This document shows positions 24,555-64,000 of a stretch of 64,000 nt of DNA, in pieces; position 1 is the first letter of the stretch, and each line of letters opens with the position of its first letter. Both the position numbers and the translations under genes were made by a program. This DNA comes from Marsupella aquatica (lineage: Eukaryota; Plantae; Marchantiophyta): positions 2,441,573-2,505,572 of the forward strand of contig OZ316899.1 in the NCBI GenBank assembly GCA_973895155.1. Direction: 5' to 3'. The notes below the pieces were generated by a model. That model made no database searches and was not told the origin of the DNA. It saw nothing but the letters and a program-made list of their open reading frames with translations.

Positions 24555-26757
24555 CATGGCAAAAAACACTCGCGCAAAGAGTGGCAAGCAGGCTCCCCCC
24601 ACCAAGGGGAGAGCCCAAGTTCACGATGAACAGAAGGAGGATGGGTTGACTTCCCTAGACGAACGTTACAAGCAAGATGAAGAAGATGCAACGGCCAAAC
24701 CGTTGACCGCTGCAGAAAACAAGTCAAGTGCAGAGCGCCATCAACTTAAAGGGAAGGAGGCGGCTGATCCTTCAGAGGATGGGTCGGATGCCCACGACTC
24801 CAACGCAACCGCAAGCGACAACAACGCTGAAGCTGAGACAGAGGAAGAGGGTCAGGACCCGGAAGAGGAACTGATCCCAGCCTTGAGAGGGTTGAATGCG
24901 GAACCAGAGGATGATGCCAAGCCGGACATCATCGTGGATAATTTAACCAAGCAGAACCAGGATGACGCGGGTGATACCTCAGTCCCGGGAGGTCATGGTG
25001 CTCGCAAGACGCGGGGCTGTTACCAAAATCCACAAGAGAACCTAAGGACAGGCGGCCCGCAAAGAAAAGACGGTTGGAGGACCGTCCTCATACAACCCGC
25101 AAGGGCCCGACCGCTGACGACGGTCTGGGTCCGTTGACTCAAGACCAACGACTCATCTATGAGCAGTTGGAACACAACAAGGGGGCCCAGATTAAGTACT
25201 TAGTCTGGGTAGTCAGAGTGCGTCGCGTCCCGAGGGGGGAATGGTAGTTGGACGGAGTATGTTCCAAGTGAACCAGCTACCGACTCCTCCAACTTACGAC
25301 AGGGCCTACAAACAAAGTGGACAAAAGTTCCTGAGTTGGCTCTCCACGATGGAGATTCATCTCCAAGCGTGCGTTGAGCGTTCCACTTGGGCTACCGCAG
25401 CCGCTCCTTACCTGAAGGACTATGCCTTGACTTGATACAAGTCATGGAAGAAGTTGCGAGAGGACTCTTCCTTGCCGTTAACTTGGGAAAACCTGGTTGA
25501 GGGTATCCGTGCTCATGTCACCACTAAGTACCCAAAGCGGCACGCTCAGAAATGCGTAACGGAGATGAGTTTCAGGGGTGATATCCAAAAGTTCATCACT
25601 TATTACCAAAATCAGTTGCGTGTATCCCGGCGGGACAAGAGACCCTACATACATAGCTTCACAACTTTATCGTGAAGCTCCCGCCGTTGCTCAGGGAAAA
25701 GTTGCAGGAAAAGCGTCATGAGTTCAAAACGCTTTCTGACGCCTTCGACAAGGCCACTACGTTGGTGAATAACCAACCGGACTTGGCGAAGGTGGGTGGC
25801 AAGGGATCCGAGGGGGAAGCTGGGAAAGTGAAAGGTCCCGGGAATAAGCATAAGCAACCTGAGGGGGCGGGGGCCGGTGGTTCGGATCCCCAGCCCCAGA
25901 ATGGAGAAGCTAAGCGAAACCGGAAGGCCGGAAACTTTAAGAAAGGAGCCTCATCGGCACAGAAAGCAAAGAAGCAGGCAACCATGGAGCAGAGGCGGGC
26001 TGAAGGTTTGTGCTTCACATGTGGTGCCATGGGCCATCAAAGTAAGGATTGTTCCACGAAAGGTGGCAAACCAAACGGAGATGGTGGAGGGCAGAAGAGC
26101 ATTAAGGTAAGTATCGCTCTAACCGAACCCGTAGTAGCTAACGAGGTCCCTGTAGGGGATGTCCATGACGGAGAGAGGGTGTTGTTGCGAGAGAAGATAC
26201 CTAAAGTTAAGACAATGGATCCTGAAAAACTGATTTTTGTGAATGTCACTTCTAACGGTAATTTGGGTGTTGCTTTGGTGCATACAGGCACGACCGCCTG
26301 CTTCATAAGTGGGCAGGCGGCAGCTCGTCTTGGGGTGGACGTGCAAGAGTTGCTACAACCGTTAGTGTGCAAGTTTGCCAACGACACGAAGGGGATAGTG
26401 TCGAGAGTAGTGCATAGACTTTGGGTAGAGGTCATAGGCGAACAACAAAATTTTGTTAGTCAGGAGATGTTCTACGTTCTATACGGTCTGGCCGTAGACT
26501 TCATTTTGTCGGTAGGTTATCTCAGAAAGCACAATGTTACCTTGAAACCGGGGGGTGAGGTGCTCCATTTTCCCAATAAGGGCGGTGAGCCCATCGTTGT
26601 ACACGAAATTACCAAAAATAAAGAAAGATTTCTTAAAGTAAGTAAAGTGTCGTGGATGTCTCCGTGTGTATCGGCAAAGCAATGGTGGAAAGACTTCAAG
26701 GGTGGACATGAATGTTTCTTCTTTCATCTCCACCCAACTAAGGAGGCTGCGTCGTAG
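24555..26757 (+). pseudogene. Chromovirus gag and protease
   Basis: Gag core WLSTMEIHLQAC; knuckle CFTCGAMGHQSKDC; protease ALVHTGTTACFIS (catalytic D replaced by H). Frameshifts and stops present. Confidence 0.85.
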
Positions 26758-26829
26758 CCAAAGGTCAAGTCAGCTAAGGTTGGGCCCGACTGCGGTTGAA
26801 TTCCTGAAATTTTAGAGGAATTCAACGAT

Positions 26830-43002: not shown

Positions 43003-46000
43003 TGTTGTAACTCATACTTGAGTTAAGTCTACCTTTGGGATAACTACCTATGTAACTACCCTAACTACTTAGGCCGTAGCCACATGTATATATTCTACCA
43101 AGAGTAAAGATGGAACTAACTCTTTATCTCATTTCTCCCACAACACGTTATCAGCACGAGCCTAAGACTGGCTGAATTTTTTTTAGGCCATGACTGATTC
43201 ACTCTAAGACGAAGAAAGAAGGGAAAGACGTGATTCGAATGTGCCAAAGTTTTTTTTGCGAGAGCTGCTTGAAGCGCTGCATGAGCAATTTTTCTTTGGG
43301 AGAAAGGCCAAGGAAGAATTGATCCCGGCTATGGTGAATTGAATATCAAGGCGCCATCTTATTCGGCGCATGCTTTTTTTCAAGTCGGTACAGCAGTAAG
43401 GCAATAGCAACAGTCAGTCAGAGCCAGTGTTGTTGACGCGAGCACGAATCTGGAAACGAGTCAGTGATTGGAACTCCAGCCATTCGAGGAGTCGGAAGTT
43501 GGTGGCCAAGGCATTTTCTCATTTACTGGCGAGCAAGCCTCTCACACCAACTACATCTCTGATTGATAAGATTTCTAGCGAGCACCAGCTCACTGACGGC
43601 TGGTCGTGAGCACACAACAGATTGGAGTACGACAATCTACTCTGTTTCCTGTGTTTGCTTCCAGTTCTACTCGAGTCTACCGCTGGAGGCATTCGCAATG
43701 AACGAAAGCAACATAGGATGCATTGCGTAAGGACACTACAAGTGAAAGATCGAGGCGATAAGGGAAGAAACTGAAAACGCTCGGGAAGAGAAGAAGAGAG
43801 ATCGAACGAGAGAGCACTCTTAAGAAAATTGGACATAGACATTCATCAAACATTCGAGAGGAATTGATAAGGACAGCAAGAACAGAAACGCAAATCAATA
43901 TCATCACATAAGAGAACCGATCCAAGGCGCAGATCACAGCCTCAATTCCATAAGGAACTCGTAAGGATAGCAGGAGATAAAGAAAGGCTCCCTGGACTTC
44001 GAGCCTGCGATTGGAACCATCGAGGAACACGATTCTATTTTCTTGAAGTAGGCATGGGCCCAGCAAAAGCAACAGACGCATGCTACTCCACTATTCCTTG
44101 CAGAACTATGCTCCCTTCTACGTTCACGCGCACGGTCTATGAGCTTTCGGATTCAATCATGTCGTCAACGTACCAAAGTTTCAACTGCAAAAACTGCCCT
44201 GTCCGATAATCCTTCACGATAGTACCGTACAGAGCATCATCCCAATCTCGCGTCACTTGAGAATTATTCCCTTACGCCTTCCCTAACCCCAGGGTAGCTA
44301 ACAAGCTTTCGAGCACGTTCCACGCCCGTATCTTGCGAATCTGAGAAGCTCAGACAGTTGAGATGCAGATGGAACTCCATATCGTTTTGGTCGAATCCAG
44401 ACTATCAACTCCCTTTGAAGCAGAAGAACATGGCCACTTTACTAGATTGAATTATCTAATCTTTGACATGGATGTATTCGAAGATCTGAATACATCCATC
44501 AGTCTCGGCCAAATGGCTCCCTGCAAGTCGACGACTGATTGCTTGAAGTTTTCTGCTGGTGGAGGTCACCATCCGCACATTTGATCTTTATGCCCTCGAT
44601 TTTTGTCTCCTATCACCAATGAGCATCGTTTGGAGCTCGGAAATAGCGACGAGGCCGATTACCTGAAGGACCCGAACGAGATCTGCGTTCATGGAGATCT
44701 ACGTTTTGGAACGAGTCATCAGACCTCCTATTTCCAGTCCGTGAAGGCGACCTCATACGGAAGATTGATTCATAAGGAACACCCATACGCCTAATTCCCA
44801 ATTGAAAAGATAGGAAGAGAGAAGACGCTACAGAAATCAAACACAGATCGTGAGCAAGGCAGGCAGCATTGCGAACATATAAAGACAGTCCATGATCAAA
44901 CACGAAGGGAGAAACTGAAAACTTCGAAGGAAAGAATGCGAGATAGAGGAGAAACAATAAGCACCGAAGGCAAGGAGGATAAATCCAAGAACATTGAAGG
45001 AAGCACAAACCCGAAAAAGCAAAGAGAGAACCCTGAAGAACGATGAGGCGAGACCGAAACTAATCGAGCCAAAGAGAGAACGTGAGGAACGCCAGGAGAG
45101 AGAAGGACGTCCAATGCAGATGGAGATCGTGGTACAAGCTAAAGACGAGACGCCGGGCAAAGGAGGCAAACCACATCAAACCAAAGGGAAGTCCACCACA
45201 TTTTCTTCTAAGAAGACCATTTTACACTAAGTAATGGAGAACTAAAGAACAAAGAGACTTTCTCTTCAAAAGGAAAGAAAAACCAAACAACAAGACATGA
45301 AGTAAGGACATAAAGAAAGAAGCTAAGGTACAGAATCTACATGGAGACAAATGATGACTGAAAACAAAAAAAAAACATTTCAGAGTTATTAAAGCCAACT
45401 GCAACAAGGTTGATTTGTATTAACATTCACAAGAACACTTCATGCCATGCCAAAACGATTTAAGGCACCTACGAAAACACTTATTGAAAATGTTAATGAT
45501 GGTTATTTCCACCAATTAATTTCATAAATTCAGGGGGAGATATTTTTCCCAGGGGTGCCTACTGCACATGGAAACAAATGGGTGCCTACTGTACACCCAG
45601 GCAAAAAGGACATATATTTGACAAATTGAGGGGGAGACCTCAAGTAAGACTTGACATCAAGCAATGTAACCCATGGGATGTGCCTATTGCACAAGTGCCT
45701 TTCGCACCAATGAATACCTAAAAATGGAACTCTATTCCATGCATATGGCAAATCATGAAATCTAAGGAATTTTTATAAATGATTGAACATGGTGTTAACA
45801 CAATCACTTACCAATACTTGATGAGGTATACTGGATATTAAAGTACCATATGATATATGAGGTACAGTACCAGGTCATAAGGTACCATAAGGTGAGACAT
45901 GGCATGGTAAGGCACCATAAGAGATGGTGCGCCATACCCCAATATGATAACCCTACGTTGTGGATATGGTACGTGATGTGGTGCAAATAGGTTATGCCCA

Positions 46001-46666
46001 CACCAAATCTAGGGTTGGACACCCAATCCAATTCCAAGGCCATGGATTACACCATATCATCTTCATTTTGTACTAATACTTTGCTTTGTCATGGCATGTA
46101 ATCGGTGACCATCAAGGAGTCTCCATTTCCCGATTGGAAGGAGACACGAGAAACAATCAACCAAGGAGGATCTTCAACAAGCCTATAGTGTTGACAAACA
46201 CCTTAAGATACTTTGTAGAAATTACACATACACTATATACTTAAATCCAATTATGTTTCACCCATGGGGATGGTAACACTCTTTCCTCCCACAAAGAAAG
46301 TAGGGGAGGTTTTAATGAGGTTACATCTCCCACTTACACTTTACCATACAACATGAATTATAAGACATCTATTAGGAGAAGCTTTTCATTTATAGTAGAC
46401 TTGAGATGGCTACACCATTTATAAAATAGGCTAGACATAAACAAAACCTATTGTATACCACTGAGTATGCCCAAAGTAGACTCTTGATTGTAACATTTAA
46501 ACCCCAATGTTACAAAGGGGGAGTGTTGTAACTCATACTTGAGTTAAGTCTACCTTTGGGATAACTACCTATGTAACTACCCTAACTACTTAGGCCGTAG
46601 CCACATGTACATATTCTACCAAGAGTAAAGATGGAACTAACTCTTTATCTCATTTCTCCCACAACA
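43003..46666 (+). mobile_element. Non-autonomous Ty1/Copia (Bianca/Bryco-type PBS), recent insertion
   Basis: 143-bp LTRs at 43003-43145 and 46524-46666 with one mismatch seen; TSD CCAAT; PBS CGTTATCAGCACG; PPT AAAGGGGGAG; internal (C)AGGGGGAG motifs; no intact gag-pol. Confidence 0.93.
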
Positions 46667-49089
46667 CCAATTTCATTTTCCCTGTGCACTTCTATTTCTC
46701 AGAGAATTCCCTGGTCATGCTCATTTTCCCCAAAGTTAGAAAACAAAGAAGAAGAGTTGACTAATTGTAATTCCAATCCATATCCTGATCGGTCAAGGAT
46801 TGTTCACTACATTGGCCTTGTCATTGGCCGAGGTCACCAAATTTTGCTTGGTTTCATTCCTGTTGAGCACTGCTGTGATGGATGAATAGTTTTGTCTTGC
46901 CTTGAAGTGGGACATTGGATGAATCCCTCAAGCCTTGTCTGTTTTCAAAAGCTCATAGTGTTTACCTTCAGCTATGGGCGGTTGACATCTTTTAGCATTC
47001 TTTGTGGTGGTGCCTTTCTTGCAGAGCTCCTGCTCCAACTGCCCCTTTTTCCTGGTAAGTTGTGCAACCTTGATTCCAGTATAGATTGAAGTATTCTTGT
47101 CTTAATTGTGTCTATGTACATAGTGTCCTTCATTGCAACTGTCCTTCAAAACCTGTTGAGTTCCAGCAAAGTGAATAAGGCGCCATAAGGCATTCTGCCA
47201 TCATTCCAATCAACTTAAACAAAAATGGAGCTTCAATATGAAATGAAAGCATTTATCCCCTCCCTAGACTAATCAAAGTTTCCTAGCAAAAGTTTATACG
47301 TTTTAATTGTCCAAGTGTAGGTTTAATCATGAAAGTGCAGGCCGCTACACCAAGTGCTGGTTGGTGGCCTAAGTGCAGGGTGGTAGGCGGAGTACGTTGC
47401 CTGGCCCTATTACTTTTTCATTGTTTGCCTATGGTGTTGGCATTTTTCTCACACTCATTCTCATCCTCCAATAATTATTGGCAATTCAACTATCCTCTAG
47501 AATTTAGTCAGAAGGTGAACTATTAGTAAGACTACATTTTCCCTTTGCTCACAATTGAATTTCATAATCCTACTTGTCGTAGCATTCTGCAAACTCTCAC
47601 GGTTTGCTTATGGCCATTATTTGCAATTTTCTGCTACTAAGATGTCTTCTTCTGAGCAACATACACCGGAAGTAAGCAATAGTGGAGGTTTAACTGCACA
47701 TCAACACATCCAGTGAACTACCTCTCTGCTGCTCACTGCAAGGTGAGACTTTCACTCTTTCTGGATATTATAGTTTGTAAGCAAGTTGATTAGGAGTGTT
47801 TCATGCTATGTTTATACTGTGACCTCTAGCTGGAACCAAGGGAATGACACAGTGAGTGGGAACTGATAATTTAAGGTTGGTTGCTGTTGGTGAGGCAAGT
47901 ACAGCTCCTGATCACCTTGCTGATCGAAGGTGCTTATCAGAGGACGTGAACACAGGACATCTCCACAAAAGCAGCACTTATGGTGAGGACCCACAACACT
48001 GAACATGTGCGGCTTGCACGCAAGGCAAAGATGTTGCACCTTGAGTATGTCAGACTTGGGATCCTTCCAGCCCAGTCTGCATGGTACTTTCACTAGAAGA
48101 AAACCTGTGTTTTACTACTACAGGCCTTGCAACTACTTTGCCTAAACAACTCATACGTGGTGCCAACCACTGTTTTTTTAATGGGTTGTAATAATCTGCA
48201 TTTTGTGATTCTAATTAGAACTATGTTACCTTAATCACTAATTATAACTCTTTTTTTTGCCACTAAAACTTAGATCACTTTAATTAGAGTTGTATATTAT
48301 ACAATTTTCAAATCACTACAATCCACCGTCCATTACACCGTCAATGTTTACAACTCTATTTTTAACTAAGATTTTACTACTGGCCAAAAGCACTACAAAT
48401 ACAAGTACCACCAATATTTGAATGGTAAAGGTGTTTTTTCAATCAACTCCCAATCAAGTGAATATTTTCCAAGTGATCTTAATTACTTGAAATAATGTCA
48501 TTTGTGAGCACACCTTTTGTTACTATAAATATCACCAATAGTGGAGTCATAAATGAATTTTGGCAAAATCACTTAAAATATTTTAGTGACAAGGAAATTC
48601 TTACAAACAACTTAAGATTGAGTGAATTAATTGTCAATGTACAAAATCTCTTTAAGTAAAGTCATTATTATCACAAATTGTCTGACTAGAAATGCCACTA
48701 ATATTAGAGTCCAATAAATATTATTTGATGCAACTACAAACCAAGTGCCACATCCTCTTTTGGTCCAAAATCACTCTAAAGAATGTTATTCTCTTCGCAC
48801 ATTTTAGTGACTCCAAATGCCACTAAGAGTAGAGTGTCAATGGAGGGCCTTGCAAATGACTTGAAATGAAGTAGATCATTTTTCATTCTCAGAAATCACT
48901 ATGAATAATGTCATTATTTAAATACATTTTGCAACTACAAATGCCATCAACATTAGAGTGTCAGAACAGTTTTGACAAATGACTGAAAATTGAAAGGATT
49001 ATTTTGTGATGTCCAAAATCTCTCCCAATGATGTCATTAGCAACACACATTTTCAGCCACGATATGCATGCCACCAAAATTACAGCGAT

Positions 49090-51920
49090 AAATAAATTCT
49101 TTTTTACAAATTGTACCCAAACCACTGCAGAACATGTAGTTTGAGGGTTTTGGGCACCTGTCACTTGAAATACCACCATGTTTTGAGTTGGGAAAGTTAT
49201 GTGTTTGAACTTCCAATCAAGTGCATTGGTAAATACCAGCCCAACCACTTAACATAAGGTCCTTTCGGGCTCTCATCTTCTTGCAACTACAAACTGCATC
49301 CATATTTGAGTGATGCAACACACATTGGTGCGATCATTTGCCATGAACTAGTGCTAAAAGGAGTGAATTGTGTGGATGCATCAAATAAGCCTCATATTTG
49401 TAATTCTGTAGAGTCTTGGAGTGATTTGTGTGGAGTTCATGATGTTGCATCACTTGGGTGCCTCAAATATCTCCACCTTGGCAATTTATGCATCACAATC
49501 TCATTGTCGTTGCTATAACTAGTTGGCACACGTGATGGGGCTGTCCCATGGGTTCACCATGGGGGAGCTAACACGGAGGAATTGTGGTGGCGGCGGGCCC
49601 AGCCCTCCTCCTTTAATCGTGACCCTGCGAGAATTGCGGCAAGGTGGATCCACTTCTCATTATCCATTGTAAGTCTGTCACTCTGGAAACCACTCGAAAC
49701 AATGTGCTTTAAAGCTCTCATTTCTAGCGACTAACATTGTCACTCAAGCTGGGGTGGTACATCACGCATCCTTCTAAACAACTTCTCATGAAGTGGTAGT
49801 CCTAGGATGATTGGGGGGCAAACCACTACAAATGAGGTGGTTTTAGGGTTTAGGGCAAATACAACTTAAAATACCACCTTTATTTGAGTTGAGAAATAAA
49901 TTGGGTGCAAACACTTGCAATGAAGTGTATTTATATGTACACGCCCAATTGATTCGAAAAAAGGTCCTTTCAGGCCCTCGCCTTTTGGCGACTACAAATT
50001 GCACCCATATTTGAGTGATGCAGCACACTTTAGTGTGATCCCAAACCATGAACTAGTGCTAAGAGGAGTGAATTGTGTGGATGCATCAAATAAGCCCCAT
50101 ATTTGTAATTCCGTAGAGTCTTGGAGTGATTTGTGTGGAGTTCATGCTGTTGCATCACTTGGGTGCCTCAAATCTCTCCACCTTGGCAATTTATGCGTCA
50201 CAATCTCATTGTCGTTGTTATAACTAGTTGGCACATGTGATGGGGGTGTCCCATGGGTTCACCATGGGGGGGCTAACACAGAGGAATTGGTATGGCGGCA
50301 GCCCAACCCTCCTCCTTTAATCGTGGCCCTCCAAGAATTGCCGCAAGGTGGATCCATTTCTTATTATCCATTGTAAGTTTGTCACCCCCCAAATCACTAA
50401 AAACTTTGTTCTTCAAAGCCCTCATTTCTAACAACTAACACTATCACTCAGGCTGGGGTGATACATCACGCATCCCTCTAAACAACTTGTCATGAAGTGG
50501 TATTCCAAGGGTGATTGTTATTCCCAAACCACTACAAATGAGCTGGTTTTAGGGTTTAGGGCAAATGTAACTTAAGATACCACCTTATTTGAGTTGAGAA
50601 GTAAATTGGGTGCGAACACTTGCAAAAAAGTGTATTTATATGTACACGCCCAATTGACTTGGAAAAATGTCCTTTGAGGCCCTCGCCTTTCGGCGACTAC
50701 AAATTGCACCCATATTTGAGTGATGCAGCACACTTTAGTGTGATCCCAAACCATGAACTAGTGCTAAAAGGAGTGAATTGTGTGTCGCATCACATAAGCC
50801 CCATATTTGTAATTTCGTAGAGTCTTGGAGTGATTTGTGTGGAGTTCATGCTGTTGCATCACTTGGGTGCCTCAAATCTCTCCACCTTGGCAATTTATGC
50901 GTCACAATCTCATTGTCGTTGTTATAACTAGTTGGCACACGTGATGGGGGTGTCCCATGGGTTCACCATGGGGGGGCTAACATAGAGGAATTTGTATGGC
51001 GGCGGCCCAACCCTCCTCCTTTAATCGTGGCCCTCCGAGAATTGCCGCAAGGTGGATCCACTTCTCATTATCCATTGTAAGTTTGTCACTCCCCAAATCA
51101 CTAAAGACTATGTTCTTCAACTTAGCCCTTATTTCTAGCGACTAATACTATCACTCAAGCTGGGGTGGTACATCACGCATTCCTCCAAATAACTTCTCTT
51201 GAAGTGGTAGTCCAAGGGTGATTGTTGTTCCCCGCTACAAATGAGGTGGTTTTAGGGTTTAGGGCAAATGCAACTTAAGATACCACCTTTATTTGAGTTG
51301 AGAAGTAAATTGGGTGCGAACACTTGCAATGAAGTGTATTTATATGTACATGCCCAATTGACTCGGAAAAATGTCCTTTGAGGCCCTCGCCTTTTGGCGA
51401 CTACAAATTGCACCCGTATTTGAGTGATGCAGCACACTTTAGTGTGATCCCAAACCATGAACTAGTGCTAAAAGGAGTGAATTGTGTGTTGCATCACATA
51501 AGCCCCATATTTGTAATTTCGTAGAGTCTTGGAGTGATTTGTGTGGAGTTCATGATGTTCCATCACTTGTGTGCCTCAAATCTCTCCACCTTGGCATTTT
51601 GTCACAAACCTCATTGTCGTTGCTATAACTAGTTGGCACACGTGATGGGGGTGTCCCACGGCTTCACCATGGGGGGGCTAACATAGAGGAATTGTTATGG
51701 CGGCGGGCCCAACCCTCCTCCTTTAATTGTGGCCCTCCGAGAATTGTTGCAAGGTGAATCACTTCCCCGTCCACTTCTTATTATCCTTTGTAAGTTTGTC
51801 ACTCCCGAAACCACTCAAAACAATGTGCTTCAAAGCCCTCATTTTTAGCGACTAACATTGTCACTCAGGCTGGGGTGGTACATCATGCATCCTTCTAAAC
51901 AGCTTCTCATGAAGTGGTGG
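49090..51920. repeat. ~705-bp tandem repeat, about 4 units, in the CACTA 5' subterminal region
   Basis: The same CTACAAA..GCA..C.TATTTGAGTGATGCA anchor recurs at 49287, 49992, 50697 and 51401. Confidence 0.95.
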
Positions 51921-53149
51921 TCGCTACTACCATCACCTAGTCAGTAGTGATAAATGACATAAATGTTGTAATTTACAAACAACTTACAATCAAGTAAGGG
52001 ATGGAGAGCTTGTAAATCCCACTACAAGTGATGTAGTATCGGACTCTCACCAAAGTGCAGCAACTATGTCACCAACATTTGAGTGATACATTGCTTAAAC
52101 CACTTGCCACCAGGTAGTGGGTTCAGAGGGGACTGGCAAAAGCACTTGGAATGTGGTGATTTTCCGAAGTGCAAGCCATTAAATTGCCAAAGAAGTTTAG
52201 TGAATGGTGCCAAGGGTAATTAAAACATAGAGAAAATTAAAACAACATCCTGGCCGGAACATGGTTTAGGGTACATAGAAGCTTGGGGTTTCTAGACACT
52301 CAGCGTATCTCTCAATGCAAGGGAGTGTCATAGAAAATGTATTATTTTGTAGCACCACTAGCATATATTACTTCTAAAGCTTTGTATGATTTACACAATT
52401 TCAAGGAGTAAGTAAGGTATTAAAATTGGCAATAGACAAAAAGTGATTCACATAGGGTACTCTAGAAATGAAAATGTGGGTTTAATTAGGATAAATGGTT
52501 GGCATTAGGACCCGCATTAGGACTCACATGGATAATGTCATTTCTCACTTTAAAAAGCATTGCGAGAAATTAAATGTTTACTACCCAAGTAATTATACCA
52601 CCTAGGTAACATTGTTGGTGGCATATTGGAAGTTCTTCATTTTTTGCACCACTTTGAAAGAGCCAGGTAGTCACCACTTAGCACTTATTTGTAGGGGTTA
52701 GACAAGTGGCAACGTTGGGGTGAAACTACATTCAAAAAAACCTGGGGGGTGAGTGGGTTGGCTTTATAACATAAGGGATGGATGGGATGGCCTGGGGGCT
52801 TGGGGTGTAAATTCACATGGCTAAGATCACCCTCATCCGATGGCTGAGATCACCCTAGGCGCTTCCATGTCAGAGTAAGTCTAGAGTACGGGTTCGCGCC
52901 AAACGGCTATTTGCACCCGCCTTACGTTGGATGAAGAGTTGCAGCGTTCCACTTTTCCGACAAAGTATCGAGGTGAAACGCTGAATGTTGTGGTTACTCT
53001 CTAGCACAAAGGGTTTAGGAGAAGAGAGCAAAGGGGTTTAGCAAGGACCTTGCACTACTTTTTTTGCCTCCAGAGCTGTGGAGTTTAGGGCTGCGATCGC
53101 ACCTCATGGATTGAGTCTGTGGAGTGCGAAGCTGCGGGAGTGAATGTGG

Positions 53150-53350
53150 GCACGGTGCACTGGAGTTAGTGCTGCAATCAAGGCTCATGGCTTTTTTATG
53201 AAGTGGAGTGCAGAGCTGCGCGGCGGAGCTATGGGAGCACAGAGTTGTGGGAGTGCGCGAGTGCGGAGTGTGGGAGTGGCAAGAGCTGCAGAGCTGCAGA
53301 GCCACAAACTGTGTTTGAGTGCAGAGCGATTGAGTGCGGAGCTGTGATTC
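53150..53350. repeat. Low-complexity GAGTGCG/GAGCTGCA repeats
   Basis: Direct reading of the sequence; probably within the CACTA leader. Confidence 0.6.
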
Positions 53351-55463
53351 AGCTGTAGCCTGTCGGAGCTCAAACAGAGTGCATTTCCCCACTGGAAACG
53401 TCGAGGCTAATCGGGCATTGTCAGGTTTTGGTGCCAGAGTTGTGAAGGAGCAGGGTTTTCGGTACGTTGGACATTGGCGCCGCGTGGTGGGCACTGACTC
53501 TCCAAACTCCTTGTCAGCGGTATTGCGGAGCTGGGCAATCTGCAAGAAGGGAGACAGGCGAGCTGCAATAGTGGACGTCGACCTACAGTGCAGGTTGGAG
53601 TTTCTAATTAGTCACCATTGCTGGGATTTGAGCTCTCATTTGCTTTGGGCTATTTGTCAGAGTCGTAAATGGCTGAGCTGATTTCCACCAAGCTGATTTC
53701 CGTTGAGCTCATTTGTGGATAGTGGACCTATTGGTTCACATTGGAGTTGCAAAGGAGCTGGCCAGAGCAGCTCGGGCCGTCACAGCTTGTCGGCAGCATA
53801 GGTCACAGCTCGGGGGAGGGTTGCCGGTCGGACCTTGGCGCTGCGTGGTGGACACTGGACCTGCCAAACTCCTTGTTGGCAGTTGTCAGCTTTCATCTGG
53901 CTCAACATACTCGCCACTCATTTGTTTGTCAGCTTCTTTCACTTCCCGGCCATGCCCTTGATTTCTTTCAGCTTTCCCAAACAGAGCTTACTTGCTCTCT
54001 GCTCTCTGCTACAAGTCCGGGTCTGAAATCAGCTGTTTGTCTTGTTTGTTTTGTGCGATGGCTTCCCGAATGTATTGTTGAGGCTGTATTGCAGATTAGA
54101 CCGTTACATTCTCGATCCAATAGACCCCTTTGAAGCAATCAATCTGAAGCAATCAATCTAAAACCTTCACAGTTTCTCTAGGAATTCTCGTCGTCTGCTC
54201 ATCCTATGTGCTCATTCTCTCTCTTCCTCTCTCTGTTTTGTGCATTGCCTTGTTTGGCAGGGCGCCTGCTGTGCTCTGCCTCGGATGTACCTGTACTGTC
54301 ATGGATGTGCTTGCAATATAGCAATAAATAACCTGCCCATGCTGATGATGCGCCTCCACAAACCCTTCCCTCCTTTTGTCTCTTGGAACACTATCGAATC
54401 ATTGCTGGTCTGTAAGGCTTACTTCAGCATACTGGTCACATATTGCTTGTTGTTTGCTATAGATGAGTACATAATGGAAGAATGAAATACTCTTTAGTCT
54501 TGTCATTTAATAGTCTTGTCCTCTCCACGTCCCGGGTTAACTGTTTAAATAGAGACAAACTTGTTTTGTTGTAGAGAAGAAGCTCTTTACTTGCTATACT
54601 AGTAGCAGAGTTCTATCTGTCTTGATCAATGCTACCTACTGTCTGGCTTGCTGTCCGATTCAATACTCTGGTTGCGCTGACATACGTGTATCCGACTTTG
54701 TGGTAGCTCAAAGCCAATGACGTTCACACTCTTGACCTTTGTCTGTTTTTGCTGGGGCAAGATTGCCGTAAAGTTGTTATTACTGGCTGAAAGGTTTACG
54801 TCTCCAAATTTACATTGAGGTTCTACATGTAACAAGTAGGCTACTACCCCCCTTGGTCTTTTGTGGACAATGCTATTTTATTGGCGCTATCCTTGTCATT
54901 TGTGCTTTTTCTTGAGGGTTCTCTCATTGCCGCCAATTGGAACACCTCAAGACTTTTCTTACCAGCGAGGGCGTGAATCATGCACCATGCCAAGCCCCTG
55001 AAGTGAGATCTCACTTCATTGTCTCGTATTTCCGTGGATGTTTGTAAATTTTCATTTTTACTTTCTTGACGATCCTGTCATTTTGGTCAGGAGTGGTCAC
55101 TCTGTTTCAAGGTCTGTTTTGAGTTTCTTCATCTTGTCTCGTGCTGTTGCTTCTCTTTCTATGAATCTTGGATCAATGCTACCTGCTCTCTAGGTCGGCC
55201 TCCTATTCTGTACTCTGGTATGGTTAATGGAGTCTTGTTTGTGTGCGCGGTAAATAGAATTACCAATTGTTGGCATTGGGAAAGTCTTGAGCCTGTCTAA
55301 GCTTGTCCTTTAAAACGTGAAGGGATTCATCCCTGTATATAAACTGAAATTCAGGGTCAGTCATGAAATCTCCAGTTTTTTAACCATGGTCTTATAGTTT
55401 CAGGAGCGAGTGGACCTGCTGTGGACGTGAGCAAAGCAGCACAGGACGTGATCAAGAATAGCT

Positions 55464-55721
55464 ATGGTGAGGACTCGCAGCGCTCATTCTCATAGTCTTG
55501 CAGGCACCGCAGAGAGATTGCGTCTAGAGTTTGTCAGACGTGGCACATGGCCAGCCCACTCTACATGGTATTTTCGTTATCCAGTTGTAGTGCAGAATGA
55601 CTACAGCCGGCCTCCACCTATGGCATTACCCTTTCCCACATCCGTGGTGTATGTGTCACTTATTGGCGAAGTGCCACACGTCAAGGCCATCCTAGCGCAT
55701 GGATGTATCCATTCTTGCTAG
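55464..55721 (+). CDS. Small hypothetical ORF (85 aa) inside the CACTA
   Basis: ATG start MVRTRS, upstream splice acceptor ttttcag|G near 55400, and a local GC rise; no homology recognised. Confidence 0.25.
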   Translation: MVRTRSAHSHSLAGTAERLRLEFVRRGTWPAHSTWYFRYPVVVQNDYSRPPPMALPFPTSVVYVSLIGEVPHVKAILAHGCIHSC

Positions 55722-56674
55722 TATGACTGCGTTGCTTGTAGGGTGGTGAACCCAACAACCCTGGTCGGTGCTGACAAAGCCGCTAAACAAAGTAGGAGGA
55801 TATGCATCCTTTGGAACCACTTTGCATTGTTGAATGGTGTGGATAGTGATCTCGGGTGTCCTGCCCTGCCAAACCCCGTTATTGGGGGTTTCTCGGACAC
55901 ATCATGTTTGATTTGAAGTTAGTTTACACCTGCAGGAATTCTAACACAGTACGCACGTACCAAGATGCAATGAGATAAGGCATATTTTTGGATGAAATAG
56001 TAACTTAAACACTGAGAAATAACTTATGCTTTGACTTTTTCTATATATTCGTACAATTTTGTATTGAGGGTTTGAACACCTCAGTGGAATTAAAGTTTTG
56101 AAGTACATTGCAAAACCCCTATCTACTAAGCACAACATTTTAATCTAAGATGTCACCAGTCCACTCAACATCTCTGTTCAATGACTCTGTTCCAGAAGGC
56201 CCACAATCTATTGCTAAATGAAAGTTGAATCCAATAGTTAAAGTCTTTGTCAATGACTCCCACTCCCCCCTGGCAGATATGCCTTATGGCTCTAGATCGG
56301 GTACAGTGAATGAAGAAAGTTGAAGAGTGTCCATGTAATGTTTGTCCATGCATAGTCCTTGCCAACTCAAACCAGTGCTCTGTGTAGTGGCTCCATTTAA
56401 ATGATATTTTGTGTCACATTTGTGCTGTTGCAGATTATGAATCCTTGTTTTTACATCTTGTGACGTGAGAGGGGATTGAGATCTACATCTGAAACCGATC
56501 AAGGCAGTCTCCAAATTTCATTGCCTTCCTCTTGGTTGAGTACAATTGGTGAGTCCTCTACATTCTGGCCCCACATTGGATTGCAATATGCAAGTGGTAA
56601 GTACGTGTTTTATGACAGCCAATTTAACAGTTTAATAACTCTTCAAGTTTTCTTGTTCATGTCCAGTGGTCATA

Positions 56675-57328
56675 ATGGCTAGGACCAAGCATAAAGCCAG
56701 AAAGAATGATACTCGAACGAGAAAGGAGGAAGATGTGTTGATGATTGAATTGTGGTCAGACGTTGAGAAATGTCAGTGTAGTCCCCAGCTTTGTGGCATT
56801 TGTGACTGGCATGGAGATCTGGCCATGTGTGATGGGGCTTGCCATCGGCACTTCCACCATGTTTCCAAAGTTGGTGAGGTTGTTGGTAGGTGCCCTGCTG
56901 TATTTGTTGCACCAGGCAAGGATGATGATCCTTGGTATTGTCCAGAGTGTAAGGATAAGACATACAGGTGTTTTCAGTGTGGCATTGTCTCTACTACTGC
57001 CAGGCAGTGCCCCCAGCCATATTGTGTTCGTTTTTATTGTCATGGATGCTTGCCACTTGATGTGGAGTCTTGCCCCATCCATACATGTGTTGCATGCCAG
57101 CAGGACCATGGTGACCCTCATCTGGCAGAGGCCGTGCAGTGTTTGAGATGTCCTAAAACTTGGCATCGTACTTGCCTAGCCGAGAGTAAGCGTCAAGGTT
57201 TTGCATCGGACAGAGTGCCCTGGCATCATACTGCACATGACCAGGGACGTTGGATGATTTACTGTCCTGACCATCCTATTGACCCTGCTCTAGGCACAGC
57301 GGCTCATGATCACATCTCCTGGCTTTGA
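56675..57328 (+). CDS. EDM2-like atypical triple-PHD zinc-finger protein (about 217 aa)
   Basis: CGICDWHGDLAMCDGACHRHFH...WYCPECKDKTYRCFQC...CPQPYCVRFY...CPIHTCVAC...CLRCPKTWHRTCL...MIYCPDHPIDPALGTAAHDHISW follows the plant EDM2 PHD region motif by motif, as recalled. Intact and intronless; acceptor upstream of the ATG. Confidence 0.82.
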   Translation: MARTKHKARKNDTRTRKEEDVLMIELWSDVEKCQCSPQLCGICDWHGDLAMCDGACHRHFHHVSKVGEVVGRCPAVFVAPGKDDDPWYCPECKDKTYRCFQCGIVSTTARQCPQPYCVRFYCHGCLPLDVESCPIHTCVACQQDHGDPHLAEAVQCLRCPKTWHRTCLAESKRQGFASDRVPWHHTAHDQGRWMIYCPDHPIDPALGTAAHDHISWL

Positions 57329-58591
57329 TTCACCTGGTCCATTTTGGTTCAAATACATCATTACTACTGTAGACATCGATACAGTTAGTTAATCAATGGA
57401 ACAATGACGTTTTGTCATAATCACACATTTTGTGAACTGTGTGAATGGTTAGCACAAGCATGGAGACAGTGCTCACGGTTTAATTGACTAAGGCTTCCTA
57501 AAACATCTAAAGTACTCAAACTTTATTTATTTATTTGGTAATTATTTTGTATACCAGTATGAGGAACATTCCCATTGATGTTTATGCATGGATGTCAATA
57601 TTGTGGATGTGATTGAATTGTTTGGACCCAATGTTTATACGATTGTCTTGGATGTTGGCTATCATGGATGGGGCATTGTCAACGGGATATTTTCTTCAAC
57701 CTACTGTCTGTGGGTAGCAATAGAGTTTCAAGTTTGAAAGAAGCATCCTAAACACATAAAACGTAAGAGATAAAATGTAAAACCTTTCTGCAACTAAAAA
57801 TGCACAGTATGAACTTAAAGAGACAACTACAGAGTGGCAAGACAGTACAGATTATGAGGGAGCTGAGCTTACTGTTGTGTCCATGTTGTAGGTTCTCACC
57901 AGTGAATGTTGGAGGTGAAACACTACACTCGGTATGTCGTTTTTTCCAGATTGCCATACCATATGTAGACCCCTCATACGGGTGGCTACATGGATGTATG
58001 TTGTGGTGGTTTGGCTGGTTGGTTTGGTAATCCGGCAATTTGTACCCCCACCTGGCAGAATCATTGTCAGCCTTGAATCTGTTGTACAGTATTGTAGGGG
58101 AAATGAGGAGGAGGTTTACTTTTCGGCAGATGAGTGTGAAGCCGGGTGTGAAGAGGATGATGAGGAATGTAGTAGTTTGCTACATGTTTTGCCATATGAT
58201 TTAGTAGCCACTACTTGTAGGCACAAATCGTAGACCACCATGGCATGATCTTGGGTTAGACTTAGATGACTTAATGTACCTGCCTGAGTACCTGAGGCTT
58301 GACTATCATCGAGCACAGGAGTGGTATTTGTACTGATCTGATAAGATTCACAGATCTGATATCACTGAGCTAGTGGAGTGGGATTCTATGACTATACACC
58401 ATTGTATTCTGATATGGTCATGGATGTACGTGCAGAGTAGCCTAGAGGTGTGGAGTCCAGTGCTGGTACCATTAGAGTGGAGGATTGCAGTATCCAGAGA
58501 GCTTGCAGAGGTTGCAAGGTACGTGGGTCCTCTACATTCTGGAAAATTGAGTGGAAGACATTGATTGGATTGACTTGAAGTGGCTGAAACA

Positions 58592-61500
58592 ATGTTGAGG
58601 AACTTTCGTGGTAGTCAAGATGACTTGAATAGGAGGGATGATAAGTTATGGCGTCGACAGACTGCAGCTTGTAGAGCTGCTGGGATGACAAAGATAAAAT
58701 GTCCTTGCTACATTTGCAACTGTAGGGGTAATCGTGTGAGTCTAGGGACAGTCAAAAAGCACCTCATTCAGAATTCTCGCCACCCATCGCAAAGGTATTG
58801 GTGGGGAGAGGACTGTGACTCTTCTGATGATGAGTGGAATGCACGCTGCATGGAGGGGGATGGTGCATTTGAGGGCCCTGTGGACAATGCAAGATGTGTA
58901 GAGGAACTTGCCAATGATATGGATTGTGGCATAGATATCCCTGGGATACTAGAGGACCTGGCAATACCAAGTGAAACTGCTAATGCCAGTGAACCTGTCC
59001 AAGAAACCACTGCAGAGGAGCCCACTCTGCAGGAAAGCGAAGAGGGTCTCTTCAACATGGATGATCTTCTGGAGGGGGATAGTACATCTGGAGAAGCAAC
59101 ACCTCAGATTTGGGACCACCAGGCAGAGGAGAAGATGATGCAAGCATTTGAAGAGGCGTGTGCCCCTTTGTATGAGGGGTCCACTACTTCCCAATTGTCA
59201 TTTGTGTTGACATTTCTAAACACATGCCATAATCATGGTTTCACCAACTCTGGAGTTGATGAATTGCTTTCGTTGATGGGGAAACAGTTGATGCCTGCTA
59301 AGAATCTGCTGCCTAAAAACCTGTATGCATGCAAGAAGCTGATCAGTCATGCTGGCTTGGATTATGTCAAAATTGATGCTTGTGAGGATGGATGTGTCCT
59401 ATTCAGAAAGGAGCATGCTCATTACGAAGAGTGTCCACTGTGCAAAAAGCCTAGGTATAAGCAGGTTGGACAATCAAAGCAACCTGTGAAAGTCCTTCGA
59501 CATTTCCCCCTCATACCCAGGTTGAAACGAATGTACAGGTGCAAGGCAATTTCAGAGTTGATGACATGGCATAAGGACAATAAAAGCACAGATGGAAAGG
59601 TCCGGCATGTTGCAGATTCTAGGGCATGGAAGGAGATTGATACAACCATTGATCCAACATTTGAAGCAGAGCCTCGCAATGTACACCTTGGATTGGCTCT
59701 GGATGGTGTGAACCCCTTTGGGGAAAACAACCTCAAGCACCCTACATGGCCTGTTGTATTGTTGAATTACAATCTGCCCCCTTGGTTGTCCACCAAGAAG
59801 TTCTTCATTATGTTATCTTTGCTGATCCCTGGGCCTGATTCAGTGACTGACCGCAACATTGACATTTACATGGCTCCATTGCTGGAGGAGCTTTTGGAGC
59901 TCTGGGAGGGAGTTCCATGCTTTGATGCACTTGACAGGCCTGGCCTGAATAAGTGGTTCAATCTGCGGGCCATTCTATTGTGGACAGTGAACGACTATCC
60001 AGCTTTGGGTCTCATATCGGGTCAAGTCACAAAAGGATATCATGGATGCATTGTGTGTGGTCCCAATGTGAGCTGCAGAAGGTCTGCTGCTCTATCCAAG
60101 AATGTATTTCTGGGGAGTCGAAGGTGGTTGGAGGAGAACCATAAATACCGCTCCCAAAGTTATGCAGCAAAATTTGATGGGGAGTGCGAGCCACAGGGGC
60201 CTCCCCCAAGGATGACTTGTGAGCAAAAATTAGCCTTTGCTGCTGATGTGGAAGAGTACTTGAAAACACCTGGGGCCAAACAAGGAAGCAAGAACTGTCC
60301 TTCGAAGCTTCATGGGGTGAAGAGGACACAAGATCTTGCAAAACTGCCATACTGGTCGGTGAGTAAAATCACACTGGCATTCACCTTTTTCACTTTAAGA
60401 TATTGCATAGTACCAGCATTGTACACACATGTCAATTTGCAGTTGGACTGATCTGCTTTTTGTTGTTTGGATGCAGAAACTTCTGATCAACCATGTGCTG
60501 GATCCCATGCACACAGAGAAGAACATTGCTCAGAATTTGATTCACACTACTTCTGGGAAGAAGGATACCACTGCTGTGCGGAATGATATGGAGGCTGAAG
60601 GCATTCACGAGCAGCTGTGGATGAAGCCTCATCCAAACAATAAGAAGGACCATTTTGTGAAGCCCAAGGCGCCCTATGTGATGAGCAAACCAGAGCTGGA
60701 GGAGTTCCTGGGCACTTTGAAGAACTTGAAGGTTCCCACAGATTTTGGTAGCTCATTGGCAAAGTGTGTGAGAGCCAGCAATAAGTTGGCTGGCCTCAAG
60801 TCTCATGACTACCATTGCCTCATGCAGCAGATACTTCCCTTGGCATTGAAGGACTTGATGGCAACAGGACCTCGAATGGCTATCATTAGTGTGTATCGTG
60901 TGTGGCGTAAAATTTGCTGTAAGGTCTGGGACCCTAGCACTAAGGATGAACTGATGACAGATGTGGCACATACTTTGTGTGCTCTGGAAATGCATTTTCC
61001 AGCTTCGTTTTTTGATGTCATGACACATTTGATGGTGCATATAGTGGAAGAGCTAGATATATGTGGACCTGTGTCACAACGGTGGATGTATCCAATTGAG
61101 AGATACTTGAAAAAACTAAAGGGTTTTGTAAGAAACAGGGCACGACCAGAGGCATCTATGGTTGAGGGTTATATCCTAGAGGAGGCATTAGGATTTCTCA
61201 CAGAGTATATGGTTCAGTGCGAAGTAACTCGGCAGCGGGTCTGGGACTCTGAAGAAGAGGCAGGGGTTAAAGGTGTGGTCCTGGAAGGGGCCTCAAGTAA
61301 ACTGTCTCTAAGTGTTGCTGATCGAGATGCTGCCCACACCTATTACCTACAGAACCATGTACAGGTTGCACCATGGCTCAGGTACATGAAATAACTACGT
61401 CATTTTGTTGCTGGCTGTCTGAGTGTTCAATAATGTAGTTCTAAATGCATTGTCACAACATGACAGTCTTTCTTTTGTGGTATCTGATATTGTTCTTTGC

Positions 61501-62442
61501 TTGCTTGGAAGGTTGTATGAGTCAGAAGAGGAGGAGCAAAGGATAGAAAGAGAAGCTGTTCTAAGACAGCATAATGCAGAACGACGACGAGGCAAACGTC
61601 AAGCAATGGCCTGTCCTGTTGAATTTGCTTCCATTCCTTTTGGAGTATGGTTCAGGGATACAATACACAAGGCTAACCTGGATGACAATGAGGACAAGTT
61701 GCTGTTGACTGCAATTTCTTTTCCACCAAGCCAGAAGGCTTTGTCTTACATTTCAATGAAGGCTTTTGGGAACCATTATAGAGTGATGCGCTGCAAAGAT
61801 AGGAATGGCGAATGGCGTGAGATGTCCACTCTTAGGGACACTGATTGTCAAGGATATGCTACATTTGATTCCGGGGTGGCCACAACTTTCCATGAGCAGA
61901 TCAGGGAAGAAACCGGGGTGAATTTGGCCAAGCTTACATATGTGGGGGTTCTGACACAGATACTTGTGCTTGACTATGGACCTGTGTTACATTCTGAACC
62001 AGCCATAATCTTGAAGGCAAAGTGGGTGCGGTCTAAGTGGGGAGAGGACAGGTCTAATCCATCAATGAAACATGATGAGACTGGCCTATGGCTTGCCAAT
62101 TTTAATATGCCTTATCCCTCAGCTGAGAAATTAGATTATGTCTTGCCCAGTCAGATTGAGCAGGTTTTCTTTTACCCAAACACAGCCAGGGCCTCTTGGA
62201 GACATGTCCTCCATAAGGAAGGGAGGTCTCGACGAGTTGTTGAGGGTACAAATGACCTTGAGTTTAATGATCTTGTGGATCGTCATGAGGCTGTTGAGGC
62301 TGAGCTTGTTGCAGCAGCTAACAGACGAGTGCCCTTGGATGAAGGAGAAATTGTAGTTTTTCAGGAGATGGCAGTGTTGACAAGAAGTGATAGTGATGAT
62401 GATGATGTCTGGGAAGATGAAGAAGATTCAGATGAAGAGTGA
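58592..62442 (+). CDS. CACTA transposase (TnpD/Tnp2-like), intact, 3 exons, about 1200 aa
   Basis: Exons 58592-60358, 60477-61381 and 61512-62442 join in frame (LPYWS|KLLINHVLDPMH; WLR|LYE; 3603 nt). Motifs CPC..C, LGLALDGVNPF, DYPAL, GLKSHDYH, FDVMTHL, RWMYPIER, DUF4216-like C-terminus. Confidence 0.93.
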
Positions 62443-62515
62443 GAATGTGCCTCTTGGGGCAGGAAGTACTGATTGCTCTTTGGTGATAGTGTTTTTTATG
62501 CAGTTTTGAATTGAA

Positions 62516-64000
62516 ATGCATGATCGGTCTGGGGTGAAAGGTTCTGAGAATGCCTATGAGGCACAGAGGAATAAGAACATAGCAGCCAACCAAGCTATAC
62601 TTGACCAGTTCGTAGGAACTGCTGCAAGAGATTTAAAGTATGTACTCTATCCCTATATAGTTTTGAATTTATGCCTTGACTTTATTACTAATGGTTCACA
62701 CTCATGACATTGCCAGGGTGATTGCAGTTTACAGGGTGAGGCAAGGGTCAAGCGTCTATCTAAGTTGTCAAAGAAGACTGAACAGAATCAGCCGTCTATA
62801 GCAAAGCGTAGGAGTTCACGATTACTTGGCAGGCACCTGGAGAAAATCATGGAGAGTGACAACAGTGGGAGTGATGAGTCTGAAAAATCAGCTGAGACAA
62901 ATTATGGGGCAGGTTTAAGTGATGGCTTTGAATCAGATGGTGTTCAAGAGCTACGTAAGGTAAGAGAAGACTCATTGTCATTTTCTACTTCACTTGAAGC
63001 TAATTGCATTAATTGTCCAATTTCTGTATATCTCAATCTGGTGCTACTGTTACTAATTACTTGAATGTGCACACTGTTATCCTCAGGCTCCCCGAAAGTC
63101 AGGGCTTAAATATTATGTGGATCCTAGGACAAAGGAAGTGAGTGTGTGTAAGTAATTTATTCATTACCTCACTTGCCATGAACTTGTTTTTGACTTGCCA
63201 AGTGAATCCTGAGTTCAGAGATTCTCACAGTTGCAGATTGATTGTCACAAGTTACATAAATGTTTGACTTGCTAACAGAATCTCTTTGGTTGGTTGTGGT
63301 AGTGACACCCTTGCCTAGAGCATCTGCTCGTGATCTGGATGATGGAATTGTCACAAAAAGATCAGAACAGACACACGTACGACAATCATCTCGTGCTGCA
63401 AAGAAACAATGGGAAGAGAACACAAGCGAGCGTCGCAAGTTGGGCATGAAGAAAGTTGCAATCACTGTATGTTGCTTGTGAAAGATCATGCTTGTGATTT
63501 ATTGTTTGTCCTCTGTTATTGGTCTCTTATGATGCATTGTGTGCAGATTTGGAACAATGATGTTGATCCCAATGATCCATATCGGGCACGTTGGGGAGAT
63601 GATCTTCGTGCTGTGTGTATGGGTAAACTGAATCCTTCTATCCGTGAGATTAAGAAGCAAGACTTAGGGGTTCTTCTTCATGTTTATGCTGTGTTGGAGA
63701 ATGATTGGGAGTATGTACAGGGGACTCTGTCAATGAAGAAGTTCAGGTCTCATTGTTCAGCAGTAATGAAAGCACAGCGAGCAAGACTCCACAAACATTT
63801 TCAGGAAGGTGGAAGACGCTTGGACAAGAAGCCCCCTGAGAATGTGAAGCCTGAACATTGGAAGGCATTGTGTGAGTGGTGGCTGTCTCCAGAAGGGATG
63901 TCTAGCATTGACAAGATGAAGTATGCAAGATCTAAAGTCATTAATCCATCAAGGGTTGGACGAGGTGGCTACCGTGGGAAGGAGTCTGACCTTGTAAGTA
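62516..64000 (+). CDS. CACTA TnpA-like (Ptta/En/Spm) multi-exon gene, running off the window
   Basis: Short GT-AG exons from 62516 to 63465, then an open exon from 63547: ...RARLHKHF...KPPENVKPEHWKALCEWWLSPE...KYARSKV.NPSRVGRGGY. Confidence 0.75.

Follow-up and report, generated by a model that had tools for sequence, protein, structure and literature searches.

A CACTA element of the liverwort Marsupella aquatica carries, upstream of its Tnp2 transposase, a conserved gene for a predicted triple PHD-finger protein of the EDM2/NSD type

The window analysed here is the whole 64-kb stretch of DNA from Marsupella aquatica. On its forward strand, positions 56675-57328 hold an unbroken and intronless open reading frame (ORF) of 217 codons plus a stop (ATG at 56675, stop at 57326-57328), whose product begins with a short basic tail and otherwise consists of a three-finger PHD module of the EDM2/NSD type. 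This PHD ORF sits between CACTAGAAGAAAACC at 48091, which is accompanied by subterminal repeats, and a Tnp2 transposase encoded on the same strand; the left terminus lies 8.6 kb upstream of it and the transposase 1.26 kb downstream. A preliminary description, made from the sequence alone, had reported an uninterrupted, intronless and Cys/His-rich ORF of about 217 aa placed between a CACTA terminus with its subterminal repeats and an intact same-strand transposase. Both points were borne out, the first by direct reading at 56675-57328 and the second by the terminus at 48091 and the Transposase_21 domain found downstream. The features of the locus are the following (a slash marks a splice junction):

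48091-48109, forward strand: left terminus of the CACTA element, CACTAGAAGAAAACCTGTG, preceded by TTT
48393-48960, forward strand: subterminal repeats with a spacing of about 124 bp (repeat families D6 and D10)
49118-51934, forward strand: four tandem 705-bp units in the subterminal region (families D1-D5 and D7)
55463-55575, forward strand: internal segment resembling 47979-48091, the DNA that flanks the left terminus on its outer side (71% identity, E 2.7e-8)
56460-56548, forward strand: putative non-coding leader exon of the PHD gene, ending TTG/GTGAGT
56549-56665, forward strand: putative 5'-UTR intron of the PHD gene, 117 nt, with acceptor ..CATGTCCAG/TGGTCATAATG
56675-57328, forward strand: PHD ORF
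57329-58591, forward strand: spacer from the PHD gene to the transposase, with no BRCT gene, unlike loci L002 and L008
58592-60358, forward strand: transposase exon with a zinc-motif N-terminal region and Transposase_21 (Tnp2; Pfam 3.1e-69)
60359-60476, forward strand: phase-0 GT..AG intron of 118 nt (TCG/GTGAGT at 60359, GCAG/AAA at 60476/60477)
60477-61381, forward strand: transposase exon with DUF4218 (Pfam 7.9e-35), donor CTCAG/GTACAT at 61381
61423-62442, forward strand: ORF homologous to the DUF4216-type C-terminal part of Tnp2 (tblastn to loci L002, L005, L006 and L007)

The left terminus CACTAGAAGAAAACCTGTG is one mismatch away from the pattern CACTACAAGAAAA; it is unique in the 64-kb window, where 0 occurrences are expected by chance. 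The subterminal repeats and the array of 705-bp units, which are 83-89% identical to one another by self-BLAST, all lie within 4 kb of this terminus, and about 4.5 kb (about 52000-56400) separates them from the PHD gene. A matching right end (expected ..TTCTTCTAGTG) was not found at 48100-64000, and the right TIR and the TSD of the element fall beyond the window. The 25 TAGTG sites present in this interval pair with the left end at 15 of 30 bases at most, and none of them is followed by TTT. Since no right end occurs inside the window, the element that starts at 48091 is not closed there and has the PHD ORF and the transposase within it. The TAGTG at 55592 was considered as an alternative right terminus and rejected (it agrees with the left end at only 12 of 30 bases and lacks the TTT flank). 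The 113 nt shared by the left flank and 55463-55575 are not consistently coding on either strand, and this likeness suggests that the element may be nested in an older related element. The copy sits in DNA rich in transposable elements (TE), with gypsy genes at 25.6-29 kb of the window.

Four public sequencing runs contain DNA nearly identical to this locus, in the form of many fragmented high-depth contigs over 55300-61299. In these runs the depth of the bins covering the PHD ORF is similar to that of the transposase bins and exceeds that of the adjacent non-coding bins. For example, PHD bins reach 43,000-69,000 in run X3, versus 10,000-21,000 for the non-coding bins at 55900-56499 and 57300-57899, these depths not being equal to copy number. 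Over the same interval the four runs behave as genomic DNA, with no GT..AG joints, and the window copy shows a few private amino-acid changes when compared to the majority of the run contigs. The ORF and both its flanks are thus as repeated as the transposase, indicating that the PHD ORF lies inside the repeated unit. The preliminary description had allowed that the ORF might lie outside the element; no right end intervenes between the terminus and the ORF, and the ORF belongs to the repeated unit, so that this possibility can be dismissed. An exact copy of the PHD ORF protein was not found in public assemblies.

Downstream of the PHD gene, Pfam searches identified Transposase_21 (3.1e-69) in the ORF at 58580-60451 and DUF4218 (7.9e-35) in the ORF at 60429-61394. 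The exon at 58592-60358 is 41-44% identical to the transposases of loci L002, L005, L006 and L007. Removal of the 118-nt intron joins ..LPYWS to KLLINHVLDPMH, restoring a sequence that is conserved in the relatives, and the counterparts of the ORF at 61423-62442 in these relatives carry DUF4216. Because GT..AG joints restore conserved sequence, the breaks in the transposase ORFs correspond to canonical introns and not to damage, and the transposase of the element looks intact, as judged from its sequence. No BRCT remnant was found in the spacer at 57329-58591 that separates it from the PHD gene.

The product of the PHD ORF is rich in Cys and His and retains all the zinc-ligand columns that are invariant or nearly so among 61 aligned PHD blocks. 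Pfam detected PHDvar_NSD at the curated cut-off (4.7e-6), as well as sub-threshold matches to PHD_NSD, PHD-1st_NSD and PHD spread over residues 38-199. In a sequence search against the PDB, the NSD3 and NSD2 PHD block aligned to residues 37-169 (E 3e-5 to 5e-4). In a profile search against 1.8 billion representative proteins, 350 proteins matched the PHD ORF at E <= 0.001. The best 150 of these 350 are mostly proteins of 1000-1400 aa, matched at about residues 210-435, and matches among these 150 reach position 218-220 of the 221 positions of the profile. Since alignments run to position 219 of 221, the similarity to EDM2-like proteins extends to the C-terminal DHI tail. Those of the matches that were scanned with Pfam showed DNMT1-RFD plus PHD_NSD, which is the architecture of EDM2, and MTase_EDM2 was also present in host-type matches. 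By contrast with EDM2, Pfam detected neither a DNMT1-RFD-like nor an MTase_EDM2 domain in the PHD ORF, which stops two residues past the PHD block; SET, AWS and PWWP were likewise absent from the Pfam results.

The structure of the protein was modelled with AlphaFold from the 61-sequence alignment (pLDDT 89.4, pTM 0.84), a five-sequence alignment having given an unusable pLDDT of 43. Confidence is low for the first 20 residues or so, and pLDDT falls below 50 for the first 8 only. A Foldseek search of Swiss-Prot with this model returned Arabidopsis EDM2 (F4K3G5, residues 193-432) as the top match, with E 3.7e-12, a TM-score by query of 0.66 and 26% identity, followed by a Dictyostelium PHD protein and by NSD1/2/3. 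This fold match, together with the profile alignment to position 219 of 221, agrees with the earlier claim that the ORF matches the EDM2 PHD block through to its C-terminal tail, and the Pfam results agree with the claim that the rest of EDM2 is missing. The model also superposes in part on the PHD5-C5HCH modules of NSD3, NSD2 and NSD1, including NSD3 bound to H3K9me3 (Z 5.8), the scores of this set being moderate (Z 4.7-5.8, below 6). In addition, the first finger carries the signature C-x-x-C-D-x-x-G-D-L..C-D-G-x-C, which resembles that of fingers holding the free N-terminus of H3 and offers a lead towards such a function. The similarity of this finger to H3-bound AIRE PHD1 is weak (Z 2.2), AIRE- and BHC80-type fingers scoring about 2.

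Locus L001, the one relative with available DNA that is near enough for codons to be compared, shares with the window a 30-nt island located about 190 bp 5' of the PHD ATG (90% identical). The donor TTG/GTGAGTC, the branch region and the pyrimidine-rich acceptor ..TTCATGTyCAG/TGGTCATAATG are also kept in L001, and the middle of the intron is unconserved. The putative leader intron of 117 nt is similar in size to the 118-nt intron of the transposase. Its first 20 nt recur with one mismatch at 58523-58542 (family D16), where they are followed by AG/TGG and an ATG (58592), as at the PHD gene. This recurrence before the transposase ATG suggests that the two genes share a leader and intron design. 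The PHD gene thus probably has a short spliced leader, and alternative splicing of one leader for the PHD gene and the transposase, by analogy with En/Spm, is possible.

The preliminary description had proposed that the PHD ORF could be spliced onto TnpA or TnpD. In such a case the ORF would be an exon joined to the transposase or to a TnpA-like product, yielding a PHD fusion. The PHD ORF does share its strand with the transposase, which starts 1.26 kb downstream of it, the copy of the intron start before the transposase ATG hints at a shared leader or splice architecture, and En/Spm elements are known to splice one precursor in alternative ways. However, among the nine homologues that are complete at the C-terminus, eight have a stop 0-2 residues past the motif HISW[LIF], the last motif of the protein, and this holds down to about 40% identity. 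Moreover, no GT donor is present in the last 35 nt or so of the PHD ORF, the C-terminal residues are predicted to belong to a confidently folded third finger, and L002 and L008 have a distinct BRCT ORF standing between their PHD gene and their transposase. A PHD-transposase fusion is therefore improbable. We favour, with somewhat better than even confidence and as part of the explanation developed below, a PHD protein that is made separately from the transposase, with its own start and its own conserved stop.

The preliminary description had left open the possibility that the gene is present in this copy only. A word-indexed protein search retrieved four stand-alone PHD proteins of 213-304 aa with 45-77% identity to the window protein, and the exhaustive profile search added further stand-alone proteins of 109-245 aa, the homologues being 39-77% identical to the window ORF overall. 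About half of the lineages share the start motif MARxKxKA. At every homologue locus long enough to show a neighbour, a Tnp2 transposase lies downstream on the same strand. Three independent and deeply diverged public loci link the two genes in this manner (four with the window), which does away with the idea of a gene private to this copy. On one strand of L002, a 13-kb ENA contig, the order is PHD, BRCT, Transposase_21, DUF4218, DUF4216, a Transposase_24-like region (TnpA-type) and DUF8039. L003 and L004 represent one locus recovered from two Logan runs, in which about 420 bp separate the PHD ORF from a downstream ORF bearing the transposase-associated zinc motif. L008, a JGI contig, carries PHD, BRCT and transposase. 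Compared to the window, the PHD ORFs of these linked loci are 39-45% identical and their transposases 33-57%, indicating that both genes diverged to a similar degree. The BRCT domain of L002 and L008 weakly matches that of Pol lambda.

Phylogenetic analysis of 99 transposases placed the four PHD-linked ones in a single clade of 14 rows (support 97). At two other loci a SET-domain ORF, which has no sequence match in the PDB, occupies the slot of the PHD gene, and the transposases of these loci fall into a second clade. The transposase of L005, which shows no PHD gene within 10 kb upstream, belongs to a third. L006, from Riccia sorocarpa, lies inside the PHD-linked clade and also shows no PHD gene within 10 kb upstream, indicating that loss occurs and that at least some copies can do without the gene. 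Upstream of the PHD gene, homology among the loci is limited to L001, and no related terminus or subterminal repeats were found in L002 or L003.

Gene predictions in metagenome and Logan assemblies list stand-alone PHD proteins of this type as ordinary genes, which would suit a host gene, or a former TE gene now domesticated, that merely adjoins transposases. But the ORF and both its flanks are highly repeated in the four runs, and a same-strand Tnp2 gene follows at each locus where the neighbour can be seen. We thus consider this explanation very improbable.

The selective regime was measured on one pair, the window and L001. Over 216 codons, dN/dS is 0.25 (pN 0.166, pS 0.477, dN 0.187, dS 0.759), and the nucleotide homology between the two sequences ends within about 50 bp of the ORF on one side and 4 bp on the other. 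As judged from this single pair, the PHD ORF is under purifying selection, and its conserved stop points in the same direction; the preliminary description had named this as a check. It had also called for a phylogeny against host EDM2. In a tree of 113 PHD blocks, 13 stand-alone proteins split from 100 EDM2-like ones with an SH-aLRT support of 99 and a branch length of 1.0, so that the TE-type proteins fall outside the EDM2 clade, in a tree that is midpoint-rooted only and whose EDM2-like side includes liverwort proteins of 690-770 aa. Within the stand-alone group, branches are as long as those across the EDM2-like set, and the window protein is 26-34% identical to host-type PHD blocks. With at most 34% identity to host proteins, a long-branched group of its own and an intact frame with a dN/dS of 0.25, the ORF is neither a near-identical copy of a host gene nor a decaying one, contrary to what the preliminary description had admitted as possible. 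As for its proposal of a captured gene, the stand-alone and element-borne nature of the gene stands; a recent pick-up from host EDM2 does not, given the identity of at most 34% and the separate group. If the gene was captured from an EDM2- or NSD-like host gene, the sequence divergence would make that capture ancient.

CACTA elements capture host gene fragments, and the PHD ORF could accordingly be a non-functional fragment of the Pack type, carried as cargo and decaying neutrally. The presence of a few private amino-acid changes in the window copy relative to the majority of the run contigs is in line with such an origin. Against it stand the dN/dS of 0.25, an intact ORF with complete zinc ligands, the retention of the PHD gene beside transposases that are only 33-57% identical between lineages, and the lack of a close host parent. 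On these sequence comparisons the decaying-cargo reading is largely refuted, and we regard it as extremely improbable.

Altogether, the explanation that we hold to be the best, and rather more probable than its negation, is that the ORF is a real accessory gene, selectively maintained by one CACTA lineage (En/Spm, Tnp2-type), whose product would act as a histone reader at silenced copies. We read the gene as long-standing and element-encoded, and from its sequence we infer that the product reads H3 tails. The gene would encode a small nuclear-type protein made of a basic tail and three interlocked PHD fingers, corresponding to the chromatin-reading block of EDM2 and NSD. EDM2 is reported to have 2.5 atypical PHD repeats, to bind H3K9me2 and to promote full-length transcripts at TE-containing genes (PMC7529245). 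The PHD protein could similarly bind histone H3 tails, either through H3K9me2-containing marks, as reported for EDM2, or through unmodified H3K4, and the transposon would use this binding at its own silenced copies. There, the bound protein might mask the mark from the host silencing machinery or imitate EDM2, and in either case full-length transposase transcripts could still be made from heterochromatin. Anti-silencing, integration targeting and a decoy role, as put forward in the preliminary description, are candidate functions.

The main alternative is that the PHD protein binds its mark in order to tether the transposase or the transposition complex to marked chromatin, which would direct insertions into heterochromatin or another preferred compartment, in the manner of the chromodomains of chromovirus integrases. 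The same conserved and transposase-linked reader gene would serve this purpose, and the present copy does lie in TE-rich DNA near gypsy genes, maybe inside an older related element. The BRCT partner found in L002 and L008, as a protein-protein and phospho-binding domain, would fit a step of transposition or repair. On the other hand, the reader is a separate protein and not a domain of the transposase, and a preference is not readable from one insertion site. Targeting is in our view unlikely.

The PHD protein and its element resemble several known systems. The three-finger atypical PHD block of EDM2 and EDM2-like plant proteins is present over its full length, but the present ORF is transposon-encoded, is 26-34% identical to them and does not have their N-terminal DNMT1-RFD-like region or the ELP/MTase_EDM2 part. 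The likeness to NSD1/2/3, with their PHD1-3 block and their PHD5-C5HCH, appears in the NSD-type Pfam PHD families, in the NSD2/NSD3 sequence matches and in the PHD5-C5HCH fold, whereas the ORF carries no SET, PWWP or AWS and identity is about 20%. With En/Spm of maize and other plants, the window element shares a left CACTA terminus that resembles the En/Spm TIR, subterminal arrays and an intron-bearing transposase of the Tnp2/TnpD type, and its relative L002 adds a TnpA-like Transposase_24 region. It differs from En/Spm in having an extra conserved chromatin-reader gene 5' of the transposase, relatives having BRCT as well or, in the sister clade, SET.

To our knowledge, very few transposons fight or exploit host chromatin with proteins of their own, examples being VANC of VANDAL elements and the chromodomains of chromoviruses. 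The chromodomain of chromovirus integrases directs integration to heterochromatin. Like these Ty3/gypsy elements, the window element is a mobile element that encodes a predicted reader of histone marks, but their chromodomain is fused to a retrotransposon integrase while the PHD protein is a separate product of a DNA transposon. VANC is reported to counteract the epigenetic silencing of its own family of VANDAL (Mutator) elements (PMC5735166, PMC10398659). VANC is likewise a separate accessory protein of a DNA transposon, and this functional analogy is the one that we favour. VANC was reported to bind DNA motifs whereas the PHD protein has a histone-reader fold, and no kinship in sequence or domain is expected between the two.

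The presence of BRCT and SET genes at the same position in related elements suggests a general strategy and not an accident. A broader proposal, to which we give slightly less than even credence, is that an old CACTA clade has an exchangeable slot for chromatin genes upstream of its transposase, which would be filled by PHD with or without BRCT or, in the sister lineage, by a minimal SET, and that such elements read or rewrite marks in order to escape silencing or choose sites. If so, a histone reader encoded as a separate protein would be known for the first time from a DNA-transposon lineage, where it would form a natural counterpart of the EDM2 pathway in the host. Full-text searches of the literature on CACTA/EnSpm together with EDM2, PHD or BRCT returned no description of such an element.

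In the host, EDM2 allows transcription to proceed through transposon DNA in heterochromatin, and a DNA transposon lineage appears to have kept a clean and minimal copy of its reading module. If this 217-aa protein binds the same marks, it would provide both a simple tool and a natural experiment, which could show the effects of a reader devoid of effector domains on silencing, polyadenylation or target choice. It would also extend to bryophytes the arms race between host and transposon over H3K9 and H3K27 methylation. Among named organisms, liverworts (Riccia, Marchantia and Calypogeia) provide the nearest relatives of the PHD block and of the transposase alike. Separately, proteins of Calypogeia fissa, a leafy liverwort, share about 70% identity with the product of a gypsy RNase H-integrase ORF located in the window.

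The place that the PHD gene occupies in the window element, immediately 5' of a same-strand Tnp2 transposase, is taken in two public CACTA loci (L009 and L010) by a small SET-domain ORF. The transposases of these SET-carrying loci form a clade of their own, and a PDB sequence search with the small SET ORFs gave no match. Other ORFs were found between or near the CACTA genes of public loci.

Additional ORFs in public CACTA loci
L009:8893-9363, transposase strand: SET-domain ORF, 156 aa (Pfam SET, 1.5e-11)
L010:8820-9359, transposase strand: SET-domain ORF, 179 aa (Pfam SET, 1.8e-9)
L002:3587-4402: BRCT-domain ORF, between PHD gene and transposase
L008:1577-2053: BRCT-domain ORF, between PHD gene and transposase
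L005:205-1689, (-): NIF/CTD-phosphatase-like ORF, near CACTA genes
L010:861-1823, (-): NIF/CTD-phosphatase-like ORF, near CACTA genes

The two loci with an intervening BRCT ORF are diverged elements, and the ORF of L002 matches the BRCT domain of DNA polymerase lambda weakly in the PDB; no BRCT trace was found in the window element between 57329 and 58579. The NIF/CTD-phosphatase-like ORF may be a further accessory gene in related elements. In L010, a DUF8039 ORF lies beside it in the same orientation.

The spacer 5' of the transposase was also compared with the four public runs holding DNA near-identical to this part of the window. Contigs diverge from the window sequence at 58437 in all four, with a common loose end starting GCAGTACATGTGAGGAC, and several also diverge at about 58207-58211, indicating that other copies are unlike the window copy in this spacer. 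A 20-nt repeat, GTGrGTCCTCTACATTCTGG, occurs at 56549-56568 and 58523-58542 with one mismatch, each copy beginning at a splice-donor-like site, 5' of the PHD ATG and of the transposase ATG respectively; it is absent from the other loci compared.

The PHD protein itself begins with M-ARTKHKARK (56675-56704), in which seven of nine residues are as in histone H3 residues 1-9 (ARTKQTARK). The tail may serve the PHD fingers as a self-ligand or histone mimic, or it may be no more than a basic nuclear-localisation tail. Relatives begin with MAR[PY]K.KA.K, so that only the skeleton AR.K..A.K is common with H3, and the structure model has low confidence in this tail.

Since the DNA directly outside the left CACTA terminus (47979-48091) resembles an element-internal segment 1.1 kb 5' of the PHD gene (55463-55575; 113 nt, 71% identity, E 2.7e-8), the sequence suggests that the window element sits within an older, related CACTA copy. 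Other repeats and mobile-element genes were located in the window.

Other repeats and mobile-element genes
49118-51934: tandem array of four 705-bp units, 83-89% identical, within the element's subterminal region
43003-43146 and 46524-46667: 144-nt direct repeat on the left side of the CACTA element, 99.3% identity, copies separated by 3.5 kb
25672-28906: gypsy-type ORFs for gag-protease, reverse transcriptase and RNase H-integrase

The gypsy RNase H-integrase ORF shares about 70% identity with proteins of the leafy liverwort Calypogeia fissa, a sign that the host too is a leafy liverwort. The tandem array is satellite-like.
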